A DNA stretch of 64,000 nt from Trichosphaerium sp. ATCC 40318 (GCA_038496445.1 JALMLS010000525.1:1-64000); one strand, 5' to 3'. Shown: positions 41,677 through 50,092, counted from the first letter of the stretch. The notes: a model not told the origin generated them from the sequence alone. Numbers and translations: made by a program.

Positions 41677-44600
41677 ATGGAGGTAGATGTACGTCTACAA
41701 GACGTATTGATATCAAGAGATTCTTCCATAAGTATGTTTAAAGCCAACTATGTTTATTACAATGCACAAATACCCTATAGGTGATGAAGACGTTTCTAAA
41801 TTTGCAAAATACCTCAAAACACGTGATGCGTATTTCGCGATAGATTTCAGGCACGCTGTTTTACTTTTTTTTTTTTCTAAACAGCATCTAATACTTTATA
41901 GTAACAATAAGATAACAGATAAAGGTATGGTAACGCGTCACGTGATAGTTTTAACAATATTATTTAAAAGCGGTCGCTCTGTTTGCCCCAGTACTATTGG
42001 AACGAAGTGTTATACATTTAGCTCTTGATAACAATGGTATTTCAGTTCAAGGTTAGTGTGATTGTGTATTTGATAGAATTGTATGCTTACGCGTCACAAA
42101 GGCGCTTCGAGGCTTGCTTCTGTACTACAACATAGTGAAACTTTAACAGTCCTTACTTTGAGTGGTAATAATATTGGTCCCACTGGCGCTACGTTACTTA
42201 TAAATGGTTAACCTTTTGACATCTATAACTGTGCACGCGAAGTTAATCTTTTTTTTATGGATAGGCTTACTATCAAATAAACAACTTCAAGAGCTTGATT
42301 TGGGACAAAACAACATAGGAGGTCTTCGGTTTGGATCATCTACAGCAAAAGGTATAATGGATTTTTTTTTTGAATGTTTCCTTCTATGACACTCCTCATA
42401 CAAACCATAATAGGCGGTGAAAGTATAGCCGAGGTTTTAAAGCATAATACAACGCTAGTTTACCTAAACTTACGGTACTAATAACCCGATAATTTCTTTG
42501 GTAATTGCTTAGTTTGGTATTTTTTGTTAGAGGAAATCTTTTTGGTTGTAGGGCTGCTAAAAGTTTCGCTGATGCACTTGTTATAAACAAAGGACTCTCA
42601 ACCCTTTGCCTTGCAAATAATTGTATAGATAGACATGTTAGTACTTTATCAATTAACACCACATTAATCAAAGCATTGTAGGGCGCTCTCGCTTTAGCAA
42701 AGAGTTTAGTTCGAAATGAAACTTTGACAGTACGTGATATTTTGCTTCCCCTATTGAGTTTCACACATGTACCTAGCATCTCGACTTAAGCTCTAATCGG
42801 ATTGATGAGTTTGGTGCTACAGCATTCAGCGAGGCTTTAACGCGAAATTACACTTTGAGAACAATAAACTTGGTGAACAATCCAATCACCTCTACAGGTA
42901 GTTTTGAAGCCTTTTTTAGAATCACTCAACGTACCACTGACTTCTCCTAAAGGCGCATCGCAGCTTGCCAGAAGTCTGTCACTTAATACTTCGCTCACGT
43001 GCCTAAATTTAGATTCGTTTCCTCGCGAACAAGAGCTCAATATTCTTTTCCTACAGCAATTACAACGAATACCTAACATAAACACAATCGCTCAGTTTTG
43101 GAAACCGCCAGATCTTTTACGCCACTTGCAGACAAGTCAAATCGTAGAACAGAATGTAGAGAATAATGTAGATGCTGTTATTCTTGTAGGAAAGCAGTTG
43201 AGGAACATACCTGCTCATGTCATAACACTGTCGAATTTGACACATTTAACTTTATGCGATAATCACATGCCACTATTGCCTGTTTGGTTGGGAAAGTTGA
43301 TACACCTCAAGAGCCTAGTTTTACGTAAAAATCATCTATCAAGCTTGGCTGGATGGCTTGGATTACTTGTGAACTTGGAACACCTTGATGTAAGGTAAGT
43401 ACGACGGACTATTTGAAGTTGCGTTTCAAAGAACTAATTATTTCGTTTTTTCTTATTTTTAGTTTCAACGCATTGACAGCTTTACCTGATGAAATAGAAC
43501 TTACAACTTCTTTGACATCGTTGAACGTAAGTTGTAATAACCTCAAATCCATAAAAGGCCATATATGCAGCTGCACAAAACTAAGGGAGCTATTACTTCG
43601 AAGAAATGCCATAAAGACTCTTCCACATAATCTTTATCTTTTATCAAAATTAAGAGTTCTTGATATATCTGGAAACCAACTATCTAACATGCTTTCATTC
43701 ATGCCAACGAACAGAATAATAACATCACAACATGATATAAGACTCCTTTTAATGTACTTGCATATGACAGGTAAAGACAAAATCAAGATGTCTCGGATGC
43801 GAGTCATTGTCGTTGGAGATAGATCAACAGGAAAAAGGTACATAGGCAAAAAAAAAAGTCAACTTAAAATCCTTCACTTCAAAAAAAGAAAACCAACAAA
43901 TTTCACGTGTCACGTGTTAGTTGTATAATTAGTGAAAACAAAAAAGTGTATTTTAACATTCGAGACGTCCATTAATTTCAAGAATGTTGACTTTCTTGGA
44001 GTTGATCGCGTTTTGTTTAGCTACTAGCTTACTTGGTTCTTATTTTAGTGCTTTAATTAAGTTGATAACAGAAATAAAAAAACCACTCAGAGAGGATGGC
44101 CGTACTTCATCACCTATAGATATAACGGATGCCACAATAGACGGCATCGATTTTGAGTTTTGGGATTTTGGTGACATAAACAAAATAAGCTACGACAAGG
44201 TATGTCTATCTTACTCTCCTGGTTTCGTTTACTAAGTTTGATGATGTAGGTATTTCATCCAATGGCTTTATATATTCTTGTACATACATTGGTTGAAGAC
44301 GAGAACGAGCAATTGCCGTTTTGGTTTAATGTACGCCAAATTTCTTTTCGTACAACTTTTTTTTTTTTGAAAAACACGTGATTTGCCGTTTTCTTATGTT
44401 AACATGTAGGAAATAAGAATGCATGCACCTACCGCACCTTTACTTGTAGTTGGTACTCACCTCGATGATAAAAAGTGTAATGAAAAATACCTGGAGATTA
44501 GGCGGTATAAAATGAGACAGTAAGCAAAAGTTGAAAAAAAAAATTACCGTACTTGTCTAAACAATTCTAATTTTATTGAATAAGACAGTACCGTCGATAT

Positions 44601-47600
44601 AATTACTTAGATTACTTTGAAATATCAAACGAGAAATCAAGACGGAAAACAGTAACTCTAGGGAAAACTAGACAGCTGAGAACACTTTCAAAGAAAAGAA
44701 GTAAGGAAGATTGCAGTTTTTTTGCTCTTTAAGCCTTTCTGATTCTTTACTCTTAAGGTGGTCAACTCAATCCGACCAAGCTTTCTCTTTTACAAAATAG
44801 ATTAGTGGTTCTTGCCAAAGCGCAGTTCGCAAGTCAGCCAATTCCAGGAAGTTACAAGGTACGACCAAATCATAAAAAATTCTCAAGAATTTGCTTTTTT
44901 TGTGGATCGATAAAGACTAAAGTTAAAGGGAGTGGTACAAAGTATGGTTGCTATAAGCATGTCAACAAGTCAATCGCATATTACTCTTGAGGAATTTTAT
45001 AAACTTGCAGCTACTTTTAAAGATGATAGAAGAAATATACAATTCGTACTTCACATGTTAAGAAATATTGGACAGATTGTGTTTTTTGAAGATGATCCAG
45101 TACTTGGGCGTATTCTATTTAGTAGGCGATTTGTACCTATACTAATGGACATTGTTACAAGAAGAAAAGTCAAACATACCAACGGTAAGTCATTTATCAG
45201 GTTCAAAAAATATTAAGGAAAAAACATAGGATTTATCACATTGTCGAAAGGTGATTCTCTGCTTCCAAAGACATTCGATAATCATTCAACGTTTGTTTCG
45301 CTATTAGAAAAGTTTGATATATCCTTCAAACTAGATGAAACCACTCATTTTGTGCCATACACTTTGCATGAAAGACCTTCAACTGTAAGCGAAGTTTTGT
45401 CTTACTTTTTTTATTGAAGTTTTTTGTAGGATTATAAAATGTTCAAAGACAAGACTGTCTTTGTTCCAAGCAATGTTGAACAACATACACGGGTTTTTGA
45501 ATTTCCTAATATGCCTTACTACTTCTTTTATCGATGTATTGCAATTTTATTCAGCATACCTGGAGTCAGTGTTAATGCAATCTATCAAAAAGGTATTTTC
45601 TCATTATTTTCTCACACAAGTTTTTTGAAGAAAGAGTTTAAACTCACGTGGTTTACAGGTATTGTCATCTCTAACGGTGGCCAAATGGTTATACTAGAAT
45701 ACATTCCGATGGAGAAAATATCCTTAACTGTTCAAACAGTAGCTACACGTGGAGAACTGCATCCAGGAGATGAACTTTTTGTAATTTTAGTAACACTTTT
45801 GAGTGGATACACATCACAATTTTTAACTGATGCTGGGCGGGTTGATTCGTTCAAGCATAGCATAGTATGTCCTAGGTGTGTCCAACATCGTGATACAATC
45901 CCACATACCACAATTTATAGCTACGACGAAGTGGTAACAATGATACTTTTGGGTAACGTCTTTTACTCTTAAACAAGAGACCATAAACAAAATACTGACT
46001 ATTCAATAGGTGACACAATCTACTGTAATGAAGTACCATTATCTCCAAGAGAATTAGCACCGGATGTTGCAATGAAATACTTACCAACAATAACAAATCT
46101 TAAAGTCGGCACTGAGGTACAAAAAACTAGACGTGAAACAATGACTGACAATGTTACAATCTAGCTTGGACGTGGTGTAAATAGTATGGTGTATGCTGGT
46201 TCTCTTGAAGACTCGAAAGGTTCTAAAGAAGTATTTATAAAGCAATACATACCAAGCAAGGTAATCAAACAGAACAAAATCTTTTTTTGCAAAACCAACC
46301 TAAAAATTAATCTCATTTTCTCACGCCAAAATCTTCATAGAAAGGAGACACAGAGAAGTTTAATGAATTCCAACGGGAAGCATACATAATGAGGTAAGAT
46401 TGACTGAGAGTTTGTTTCCACGTGTACGATTCTAAGTCTTCAAAAAGCTTGTTAAGCCACCCCAATTTGATACGCGCTTATGGTGTTGTACGCAACCCTT
46501 TGAGCGTTGTAATGAGGAATGTACCTCCTATTACGCTCCTTGATTATCTTCAAAACATGACAAAGAATAATCTGAACTTCCCATGGTCCGAAAGACGTAA
46601 AATAGCTCTAGACATATCAAGGGGCATGCAGGTGAAACAAAACAATACTGTACTTTCTCAAAAAACTAACTTTCGCAAAAGGCCATGCACAGCTTCTCAC
46701 CCCAAATCCTACATCTGAACCTTTCCGCAAGATCTGTATATGCACGTACTAGAATCCAATGCTAATTGCCGTTGTCCTGGTACGTGTTTCGTGAAATTAA
46801 CAGCTGTCGTAGGTGTACAATAATGGTGAAGATGGTAATGTTCATATAAAGATAGGTGATTTCAGCTGTGCTACTTTATACAGACCTTTCTTGCATCGAA
46901 CATCTAAATCAAATGATGTCACTTGGCAATACCAATCACCAGAGATTTTTGATAGCAAACAATATGTTACAGAAAAGTCTGATGTGTACAGGTACATTCA
47001 AAAATTATTTCCAAAAAAAAATTACATTGAAGCCACAAAATCACGTGATATTTGTGATAAGTTTCTTTTCAAAAAAATTATGCTAATGGTTGGGTTTTTT
47101 AGCTATGGCATTCTATTGTGGCAGTTAGCTTCAAGGTACGTTGCAACCTCTCTTTTTTTTTTCGTCACCAGTCTTTTGAGTACAAATTTGAATTGAATTT
47201 CTTGTCTGACTTTGATTCGTCAGTACATTGCCATACGCAGCTGGAATGCCTAGAGAGAATATGGTTCATGTCCTCACTGAAAATGAAGCACAAGATAAAT
47301 CATTAGTTGACAGAATTAAAGCGCTTCCTTTTACTGTTAAAACAAGAAGAGAAAAACTGAGGGTATCTTTTTTTGTTTTCGAATAAATAGCTTCGCGTGG
47401 TTCTTACAGTTATTTTTAGGTTGAGTGTGCAATACCTCATGTCAGAGAAGTAAAGCGTGCTATATTATCTCATAGAAAACGACCAATTATTCCTTATGAT
47501 TGTCCAGTAATGGAGAAACAACTCATGCAAAAATGCTGGTCGCATTGTACGTTTTAGTGTAAAAAAGCCGTTCGATGACTTATTTGTTTTTCTAAGATCC

Positions 47601-49764
47601 GAGAGCAAGACCTACTTTTGAAGAGATTACAACACAGTTGTCAAAGTCTATTGATAGTAATACAAAGGATCTTCTAAGAGCTACAACTTTAGTAGATTTA
47701 AAGGTCAATGATGGCATCATAAACGTAGATGAAAGGGTACGCCACGCAATACCAGTTTTTGACTTTTTGTGTAAAAAGCGAGAAAAAAAATATTGATTTT
47801 AATGATGTTCAGACGAAAATTCAATGTGAGGGTATTACATGCTGTACACGTGTTGGAGAAACAGTGTGGCTTGGAACTTCAAGAGGATCTTTTGGTGTTT
47901 ACAATATGAAAGTAAGGAGAGGTCAATCTTATTGTTTTTGAGCGTTTTTTTTGTTGACCACATTGTTATAGACCAAGATAACGAAAATGCTTCATTACCG
48001 GAAGAGCCGTGTGTATACTATAATATATACTGGAGATACTGTTTGGACATCTTACGAAGATGGTATGATATGTGTATGGAACCCTCAGGTAAACACTTAA
48101 AAAAAAACTTTTCTTTTATTTTTCCATTAATCTTCATTCAGACGCTCATGTGCGAGAAAGAGATTGAACTTCACAATGGACTAGTCAAAGCCTTGATTTT
48201 AGATAAGATTGGTTCTCAGTATCGAGTTTGGTCTGGAGATACAGAAGGTGTAATCTGCAGGTGGAAGGTATGCTACAGCGCTCAATTTATTGCAGCCTTA
48301 AAAGTTGTTTTTAGGATGTTGTTTGTATGCAACGTCTTAGTATTGACTATCCTGTCTTCAGTATGCTCAAGGTACGGATTAAGCGACTAGGTTATTTTCT
48401 CCCACTGACGTGCTTTAGGTGATGGAGAATGATAAAGAGAAAATATGGTTTGGTACAGATGGTCACGTTGCAATTTTGGATGTTTCAACAAAAAAAGTGA
48501 AGCATAGTTGGAAAGCGCATTCTGGTATGGTTAATCAATTATTACGACACAATGATACAGTGTGGACATGTGGAAATAAGAAAATCTGTGTATGGAACGT
48601 CAAGGTATACAGACACTTGAACACAATCAAGAAAATGTTGTTGTACTTTTGCTAATCTTTGGCTTAGACGAAACAACTGATAAAGGAGTTTAATGGTCAT
48701 ACAGGACGTGTCCATTGTCTTAATAAGGTAATTCATGCAGGAAAGCATCATATTTGGAGTGGTAGCTTTGATAGGTACTGTTGTATTTTGAGGCTTTTTG
48801 AATCTTGTTATTAACTGTACATTACCAATACAGATCCATTCTTGTTTGGGATCCTGTTGAATACAAGTGTGTCGCTGAACTAAAACAACACAATGAAAGC
48901 GTACGCTGTATTGTTGACTTGGAAGGTACAATTTCAATTGCATTGACCCTATTATGGGATGAACACTCCATCGTGTAATCTTTTTCAACGTTGAACTATT
49001 TTTGGTGATGAATTTGCGAGCCATCGCAGAATTGGATGTTTTTTCCTCCGTTTTCATAATCACCACTTTATTTAGTATTAATGTATTTATGTTTTAAGGA
49101 TATGTTATGAGCGGATCTTTGGATAGAACTATTATTTTATGGAAATATGCCTCCCTAAATGAAGAAAAAAAGAGTCCTGATTTTCTACCTAAAAAATCAG
49201 TTAACATACGAAGAACAGCGAAATTTAGAAATCTTAGAGCGTACACAGATCCATTTAAAAACAGAGATATGGATGCTTCTGCACCTGAAGCGTAAGGCCA
49301 GTTTTTTATTAAATATGAACTCAATTTTTTTTTTTCTAAAGGAACTTTTCCAGAGGAGCAAAGTCCCTTCCTGCTGATATGCAATTTGATGGTAATCAAT
49401 CCGTAAATTTAAGACCAAATTGGCAACATGATAAAGGTATAATTTTTAAGCAAGTTAGATGCACTGAAGTAGTTTTTTTTGTCAAACAAAAATCGTTTGT
49501 TTAGTTTTTTTTTTGCTAACATACCATGAAGATTGGCCAACATGTCTTTATTGTGGCTCGCAATTTAATTGGAAAAAACGTAGACATCATTGCAGACGTT
49601 GCGGTAAAATATATTGTAACAAGGTACACATCATTAACAAGATACAAGTGTGTCACTAACATAAAAACCACTAGTGTTGCTTTCAAAAGGTTCCAATTCC
49701 TGAAATGGGATATCACAAGCCTGTTCTTGTTTGCAAACCATGTATTAGCAAAATAACGCAATGA
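41677..49764 (+). CDS. Roco-family (LRRK2-like) protein: RNI-type LRR, LRR, ROC, COR, pseudokinase, WD40, FYVE
   Basis: RNI-like LRRs (LTLSGNNIGPTGA, LDLSSNRIDEFGA) and typical LRRs (LDISGNQL). ROC: RVIVVGDRSTGKS, FWDFGD, LLVVGTHLD. COR: LRNIGQIVFF, LLEKFDI, HFVP, ELAPDVAM. Kinase fold: EFQREAYIMSLLSHPNLI, YQSPEIF, SDVYSYGILLW, CWSH..RPTF. WD40: IWSGSFD, GSLDRTIILW. FYVE: WQHDKDWPTCLYCGSQFNWKKRRHHCRRCGKIYCNKCC...LVCKPC. Confidence 0.9.
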
Positions 49765-50092
49765 TAATACACACGTGTATTGTATTTTGTTTCATAAAAA
49801 AAAAACTCACCCTCAAACCAGAATTCCTTACACCCAGTGGAGTCACACATAGTCCAAAACAAAAAGACAAGCACTCCATATAAAAAAAAAGACATCACGT
49901 GATAATCACGTGCTTGCAATGTTCCCATATACATGTTGTTCCGTTTTATACATTGCATGTATGCCATAATACACCAGTGATCACTACGATTTGATGCTCT
50001 GTAAAAATTTTGTTTCGGATTGACTTTAGTTGTACTCGCGATAAATGTTCTCGTTTCGCCGTTATTTAGCTGATTATCTAACTACATACGAA

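Follow-up and report, generated by a model that had tools for sequence, protein, structure and literature searches.

A C-terminal FYVE finger in an expressed Roco-family gene of Trichosphaerium

How Roco proteins such as LRRK2 reach endolysosomal membranes is an active question. The known LRRK2-type routes are Rab binding, the conjugation of ATG8 to single membranes (CASM) and, as reported in a 2025 preprint, PI3P binding by a basic N-terminal patch. FYVE fingers normally dock proteins onto endosome and phagosome membranes rich in phosphatidylinositol 3-phosphate (PI3P), and the locus described here raises the question of whether such a finger has become part of a Roco protein. An earlier note, made from the sequence alone, on a 64,000-nucleotide stretch of DNA from Trichosphaerium sp. 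ATCC 40318 (GCA_038496445.1, JALMLS010000525.1:1-64000; hereafter the window, from whose first letter all positions are counted) had proposed that a LRRK2-like Roco gene ends in a FYVE finger interrupted by two introns. We find a C-terminal FYVE finger in an expressed, intron-rich gene of the Roco family on the + strand (~41677-49816), here called the Roco-FYVE gene. Its coding region (41677-49764) comprises ~38 exons and ~1,820 codons, and the exon tables, summed by hand, give an in-frame chain of 5469 bases, or 1,823 codons with the stop.

The finger is spread over three exons of the + strand. It starts with a WQHD motif in the tail (49421-49436) of exon 49342-49436 and resumes after a 95-base intron (49437-49531; GTATAA...GAAG, with a CTAAC branch-like site) in exon 49532-49623, which carries zinc pairs one and two, RRHHCR and the turret loop. 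A second intron of 51 bases (49624-49674, GT..AG) precedes the last exon (49675-49764), which carries zinc pairs three and four, LVC in place of RVC, and the TGA stop at 49762-64. In translation the three pieces read WQHDK and a single base of a GAT (Asp) codon that the intron splits, WPTC...YCNK, and CCFQ...VCKPC followed by ISKITQ and the stop; the peptide given in the earlier note agrees with this reading in its residues but omits the six C-terminal ones, ISKITQ. The Pfam FYVE profile (PF01363) matched the second of these exons by itself at E 7.8e-10 and 39.2 bits (cut-off 27.8) over profile positions 10-37, and the third at E 0.012 over positions 38-66; the one match stops, and the other resumes, precisely where the intron had been predicted. 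In a six-frame genome scan with the same profile, the segment 49528-49758 scored 46.2 bits (E 2.7e-10). Matches of the second FYVE exon in the PDB were ZFYVE16, EEA1, WDFY3, Vps27 and Hrs, with RRHHCR aligned with EEA1 and ZFYVE16, and the third exon aligned with the C-terminal halves of the Vps27 and Hrs FYVE fingers, its LVC lying opposite their RVC. The second FYVE exon is single-copy in the genome, its closest paralogues being 52-56% identical. As had been claimed, all eight zinc-binding cysteines are present (as CLYC, CRRC, CNKC and CKPC, with one extra cysteine), as are two of the motifs of the PI3P pocket, WxxD (WQHD, 49421-49432) and RRHHCR, the latter preceded by a turret loop that bears a Trp and two Lys.

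Transcript contigs place this finger at the end of the Roco-family transcript. They derive from three sequencing runs, X1, X2 and X4, of which X1 and X2 belong to different studies and X2 represents a slightly different strain; no run is registered as RNA, but the contigs of all three are spliced and are hence of RNA origin. A 971-base contig from X1 joins 48417-48602, 48666-48772, 48832-48922, 49096-49291, 49342-49436, 49532-49623 and 49675-49816, so that a single molecule carries both FYVE exons together with a linker exon and five exons of the WD40 repeats. Contigs of X1 and X2 alike show the joints 49291>49342 and 49436>49532; the joint 49623>49675 is present in X1, with a 17-base loose end in X2 compatible with the same joint. 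Both introns of the original proposal are thus removed in X1, and the first of them in X2 as well. Contig ends at 49816 (X1) and 49812 (X2), ~50 bases past the FYVE stop, mark a short 3' untranslated end (49765-49816, + strand). Between 47103 and 49764, phase bookkeeping across the 15 exons with RNA support gives an open frame with sensible split codons that spans kinase subdomains IX (YGILLWQL) and XI (CWSHYPRARP), the WD repeats and the FYVE finger, and each intron from 46992 to 49674 is backed by an RNA joint. These data show that the FYVE exons are joined in frame to those of the WD40 repeats and the kinase C-lobe, and that the transcript ends with them. The RNA-confirmed introns (n=16, 44200-49674) run from GTA to AG without exception, with lengths of 47-173 bases; in several of them a branch-like CTAAC or CTGAC precedes the AG by 10-25 bases.

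What kind of protein the finger terminates is answered by the exons upstream, all on the + strand. We consider it probable that the domains follow one another as RNI-type leucine-rich repeats (LRRs), typical LRRs, a Roc G domain, COR-A and COR-B, a kinase-like domain, a WD40 propeller, a basic linker and FYVE. Nearest to the finger, the WD40 repeats occupy eight exons (47813-49150) with weak Pfam WD40 and beta-propeller matches; each exon shows an 'S.D..I.VW'-type repeat, and the introns between them are all RNA-supported. The basic linker that follows (49151-49420, ~75 residues by exon translation) is split by intron 49292-49341, whose removal is attested by the joint 49291>49342, and matched no Pfam family. 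Further upstream, COR-A lies on two exons (44923-45384) and was matched by Pfam at E 1.7e-4 on one exon and, in the genome scan, at E 4e-6, with 35.8 bits when neighbouring pieces are included (cut-off 35.3). COR-B is tentatively assigned to one exon (45430-45952). The typical LRRs (42953-43750; Pfam LRR_8 E 1.2e-10, LRR_4 E 8.7e-8) are preceded by RNI-type, N-terminal LRRs (LRR_6) at 41744-42897, a span given by Pfam and the exon model with approximate borders, for which Pfam gave E 1.2e-4 on piece 42077-42208 and E 6.8e-5 on piece 42777-42947. A single open exon (42953-43394) carries both LRR types, and exon 43463-43837 carries LRRs together with the P-loop of the G domain. The exons upstream of 46813 are predicted, as is the ATG at 41677 taken as the start, and the 5' exon borders are approximate; one predicted intron, 46632-46681, requires a GTG donor.

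The putative Roc-type G domain (43790-44519) is assigned by its motifs and would be distributed over four exons (to 43837, 44028-44199, 44250-44330 and 44410-44519). The motifs are DFGD, THLD and, provided the splice model holds, GDRSTGK+S, and the exon with the G4 motif aligned weakly with the G4 of Rac (E 0.07). A contig from X4 carries the joint 44330>44410 within this domain. On read-through the P-loop appears as GKR; with a predicted 190-base GTA..AG intron (43838-44027) removed, the split codon becomes AGC and the P-loop takes the canonical form GDRSTGKS-LL. Because splicing can yield a canonical P-loop, the case for a degenerate GTPase is weakened, and that reading may be partly an artefact of splicing.

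Several observations weigh against the architecture as a whole. None of the single G-domain exons gave a Pfam Roc match, and the locus was absent among the scored candidates of the genome scan. The Pfam match to COR-B (E 0.014, 15.7 bits, profile 6-119) falls under the cut-off of 27. In the comparison with contigs, which covered 44200 onward, the interval 45579-46760 was without any RNA contig. Other searches with the COR-B exon contributed little: modelled by itself in AlphaFold it reached a pLDDT (predicted local distance difference test) of 48.9, and neither it nor a WD40 exon found relatives in two metagenome scans. A feature search of the ESM Atlas with the COR-B exon gave sub-0.9 transposase/RAG1 noise alone. 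One spurious match was all that HMMER returned for this exon when run exhaustively against 1.84 billion representative proteins, a result uninformative on novelty, because the exon is divergent and the size of the library raises the score needed; the match, P0001 (1,604 residues), is unrelated and has an odd architecture, with 15 JmjC domain matches in tandem. The structural side of the proposal is supported, in that the kinase C-lobe, WD40 repeats and FYVE finger are joined by RNA and Roco features lie upstream of them; it is tempered by the link from Roc-COR to the kinase, which falls in the interval that no contig covers.

The kinase-like domain (46165-47640, nine exons, Pfam Pkinase/PK_Tyr_Ser-Thr on several of them) is of Roco type in its relatives and aberrant in its catalytic residues. 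For exon 46449-46631 the only PDB matches at E <=0.001 were four Dictyostelium Roco4 kinase sequences (E 3.3e-4). Retained in the domain are a G-loop (LGRGVNS), a lysine at the VAIK position (VFIK) and the glutamate of helix C (FQREAY). Within 46682-46866, HLNLSARS takes the place of HRDLKxxN and DFS that of DFG. The DFS lies in an RNA-covered exon; it counts against firm conclusions that the HLN catalytic-loop exon (46682-46735) is predicted and lies outside RNA contig cover, and no alternative exon bearing HRD was present in any frame of the catalytic-loop interval. To judge by these residues, the sequence suggests a catalytically dead kinase, a pseudokinase, and LRRK2-type Rab phosphorylation would be unlikely given HLNLSARS and DFS. 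In this respect the label 'LRRK2-like' was overstated.

Strain differences bear on the same exons. Between the window and the run contigs we counted 14 differences, four of them within the predicted 45-base intron 45385-45429 and ten exonic. Of the exonic ones, nine alter a third codon position and leave the amino acid unchanged, and the tenth is V>I; the COR-B exon holds two of the ten, one synonymous and the V>I. The predominance of synonymous changes supports the reading frames and shows that the COR, kinase-like and WD40 parts are under purifying selection, and the gene has its pseudokinase-like signature despite this selection. The FYVE exons have zero strain differences and are hence uninformative on selection. 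One X2 contig, over 45229-45535, runs unspliced across intron 45385-45429, which contains four of its seven differences; it represents either a retained intron or DNA in the X2 run.

Whether Roc-COR and the kinase-WD40-FYVE part belong to one gene turns on the junction between COR-B and the kinase. We think it very likely that a single gene carries all of them. RNA ties the kinase C-lobe to FYVE, and single exons tie the LRRs to the P-loop; the link from COR-B to the kinase consists of predicted introns and a motif conserved in a paralogue, and so would rest on in-frame splicing, family precedent and that motif. The motif lies in a linker exon (46010-46116, + strand; ELAPDVA..YLP), which gave no match in Pfam or PDB searches (as 46012-46116): its sequence ELAPDVAMKYLP pairs with ELAPDIAFVHLP just before the G-loop of a Roco paralogue on another contig, C26. 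Human LRRK2 may have a similar stretch, IAPDL..ADLP, between COR-B and the kinase. The alternative would be two genes, one encoding LRR-Roc-COR and ending at 45970-72 through read-through of the donor at 45953, the other encoding pseudokinase-WD40-FYVE and starting at an ATG at ~46075. Such a division would fit the lack of RNA contigs over 45579-46760, the position of the ATG 15 codons ahead of the kinase G-loop, and the existence of protist FYVE-kinase proteins that have no Roc-COR (PMC10381902). It would, however, leave just ~100 bases between stop and ATG, where the next real intergenic gap measures ~230 bases from transcript end to ATG. COR-B is moreover spliced in frame to exon 46010-46116 by a canonical 57-base intron (45953-46009), and the solved relatives of the kinase exon are exclusively Roco4 kinases. 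Finally, ELAPD(V/I)A is conserved upstream of the sole candidate ATG, at whose Met the C26 paralogue has Phe, which argues for one gene. We regard two genes as improbable. An even smaller chance attaches to the idea that the FYVE tail is confined to a minor or alternative isoform, the main protein ending after WD40. The contigs give no isoform ratios, and retention of intron 49437-49531 would lead to a TAG stop near 49503; yet the contigs that reach the FYVE region are all spliced, in two studies, with no retained-intron contig among them, and the transcript ends ~50 bases past the FYVE stop in both X1 and X2. With spliced contigs running from WD40 through FYVE, neither a transcript end before 49437 nor a separate gene for the FYVE exons, both raised in the earlier note, finds support.

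Granting one protein with a FYVE tail, what the finger binds depends on its motifs. The three FYVE motifs jointly drive PI3P binding, specificity coming from the WxxD Asp and from the second of the two HHCR histidines (PMC3017826). Two points weigh against PI3P as the ligand: in place of the classic R(V/I)C the third FYVE exon has LVC, with Leu for Arg, and R(V/I)C is found in 14 of 17 other FYVE fingers read in the genome (the rest being one KVC, one PVC and one uncertain ELC), which makes the LVC finger an outlier in its own genome. The arginine lost is that of EEA1 R1400A, a change that lowers PI3P affinity ~6-fold (PMC8491906). It is conceivable, if rather unlikely, that the FYVE fold is real and works as a zinc finger with a structural or protein-binding role, or else binds other acidic lipids: the RVC arginine contacts the headgroup, its substitution weakens the binding of EEA1, and preferences for other lipids are suspected in FYVE variants whose motifs have changed (PMC3017826). 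That account has to contend with the intact specificity motifs (the WxxD Asp and the second His of HHCR) and the full set of zinc ligands, and with the fact that a 6-fold loss leaves binding, to which a Roco dimer would add avidity. With WxxD and RRHHCR kept and the RVC arginine lost, PI3P binding is expected to be weakened, not lost, and PI3P targeting by the LVC-bearing finger is plausible, possibly weak.

A weak finger could suffice if two of them acted together. Roco proteins dimerise via COR (PMC6337361), and a dimeric FYVE binds membranes far better than a monomeric one, as in EEA1 (PMC8491906). In the mechanism we propose, the finger would dock the Roco-FYVE protein on membranes that carry PI3P, those of endosomes, phagosomes or macropinosomes, where COR dimerisation would pair two weak fingers for binding by avidity, as in dimeric EEA1. 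Docking by avidity would couple membrane residence to the nucleotide and dimer cycle of Roc-COR. Since the catalytic Asp and Asn are absent and DFG is DFS, Rab phosphorylation would be a less likely output than a scaffolding role or conformational signals passed on by the LRR and WD40 surfaces. In its full form, a PI3P-wired Roco pseudokinase scaffold whose two weakened fingers need dimerisation by the Roc-COR cycle in order to bind at all, GTPase state thereby being read as endosome or phagosome residence, the proposal is possible but doubtful, and we offer it tentatively.

Scans of the assembly (70.3 Mb, 642 contigs) gave totals of 36 COR-A and 33 FYVE matches, and COR-A and FYVE occurred on one strand within 6 kb only at the Roco-FYVE locus and at one locus on C26. 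There the two matches lie 5.2 kb apart on the same strand and are collinear in tblastx, but we rejected the locus as a second Roco-FYVE gene and regard the proximity as a probable coincidence, because its FYVE and a BAG domain are read in one open frame, and between this FYVE and the Roco kinase stands a DUF4461 piece. On the minus strand of C26 an ankyrin-LRR-Roc-COR-kinase paralogue is followed downstream (~128379-129895) by the DUF4461 piece and then by FYVE plus BAG; the FYVE-BAG frame, judged from its domains, may be a PI3P-targeted Hsp70 co-chaperone-like gene. In the window, the next + strand gene starts at ATG 50045 (MFSFRRYLADYL...), ~280 bases past the Roco stop, with X1 contig cover from ~49913, and the intergenic spacers around the Roco-FYVE gene are very short.

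Full-text literature searches for Roco, LRRK or COR combined with FYVE returned no paper describing the architecture, and within those searches the novelty claimed for it stands. When the domain partners of FYVE were surveyed in 2010, the Pfam model for Roc went under the name then in use, Miro. For protist proteins that Pfam-based survey lists Pkinase as a partner 11 times, Miro once and LRR not at all; Ras is listed with a count of 1. A 2019 review of Roco proteins leaves FYVE, PI3P and phosphoinositides unmentioned and gives a domain list without FYVE, and FYVE is nowhere mentioned in the Dictyostelium kinome paper. Should our reading be true, evolution would have linked the Roco family to PI3P membranes more than once, the Roco-FYVE protein standing beside the myotubularin-Roco fusions of Amoebozoa, and the gene would provide a natural, independent counterpart of the link between PI3P and LRRK2 reported in mammals. 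As a simple system, the gene could also show whether the Roc-COR dimer cycle controls membrane residence without kinase output. This interest is tempered by the dozens of Roco genes with shuffled domains in the amoeba and by the promiscuity of FYVE in protists, and the novelty has the scope of the literature searched.

Among known systems, several share one half of the architecture. Protist FYVE-kinases such as Phytophthora PsZFPK1 fuse FYVE to a kinase (PMC10381902) and trypanosome TbFRP fuses it to a Ras-like GTPase (PMC3593210), in both cases without COR or a Roco architecture. WDFY3/ALFY and WDFY1/2 combine a WD40 propeller with FYVE, as the Roco-FYVE protein does, but have no Roc-COR or kinase-like domain. 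The association of WD40 with FYVE occurs in all eukaryotic groups (PMC2837644), and we saw no sequence evidence that the WD40-FYVE pair of the Roco-FYVE gene was acquired as a cassette. From the Roco side, Dictyostelium discoideum Roco4 (LRR-Roc-COR-kinase-WD40) has the same core order up to WD40; it has an active kinase and no FYVE, whereas the Roco-FYVE protein has HLN and DFS, an extra N-terminal block of RNI-type LRRs and the C-terminal FYVE. The IMLRK proteins of Amoebozoa (Pats1, Roco9 and the Entamoeba set) count, with the protist FYVE-kinases and TbFRP, among the closest precedents: they join a Roco core to a phosphoinositide-related module proposed for membrane localisation, and several members resemble the Roco-FYVE protein in having degenerate catalytic residues (PMC2927912). 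Their module, however, is an N-terminal inactive myotubularin and not a C-terminal FYVE, and the Entamoeba kinases are predicted to be active (PMC2927912). Human LRRK2 shares the LRR-Roc-COR-kinase-WD40 core and acts at endolysosomal membranes, and a 2025 preprint reports that it directly binds, and is activated by, PI3P (bioRxiv 10.64898/2025.12.16.694573). Unlike the Roco-FYVE protein, LRRK2 has ARM and ANK repeats and an active, Rab-phosphorylating kinase. According to the preprint it binds PI3P through an N-terminal basic cluster, with no FYVE or PX (bioRxiv 10.64898/2025.12.16.694573).

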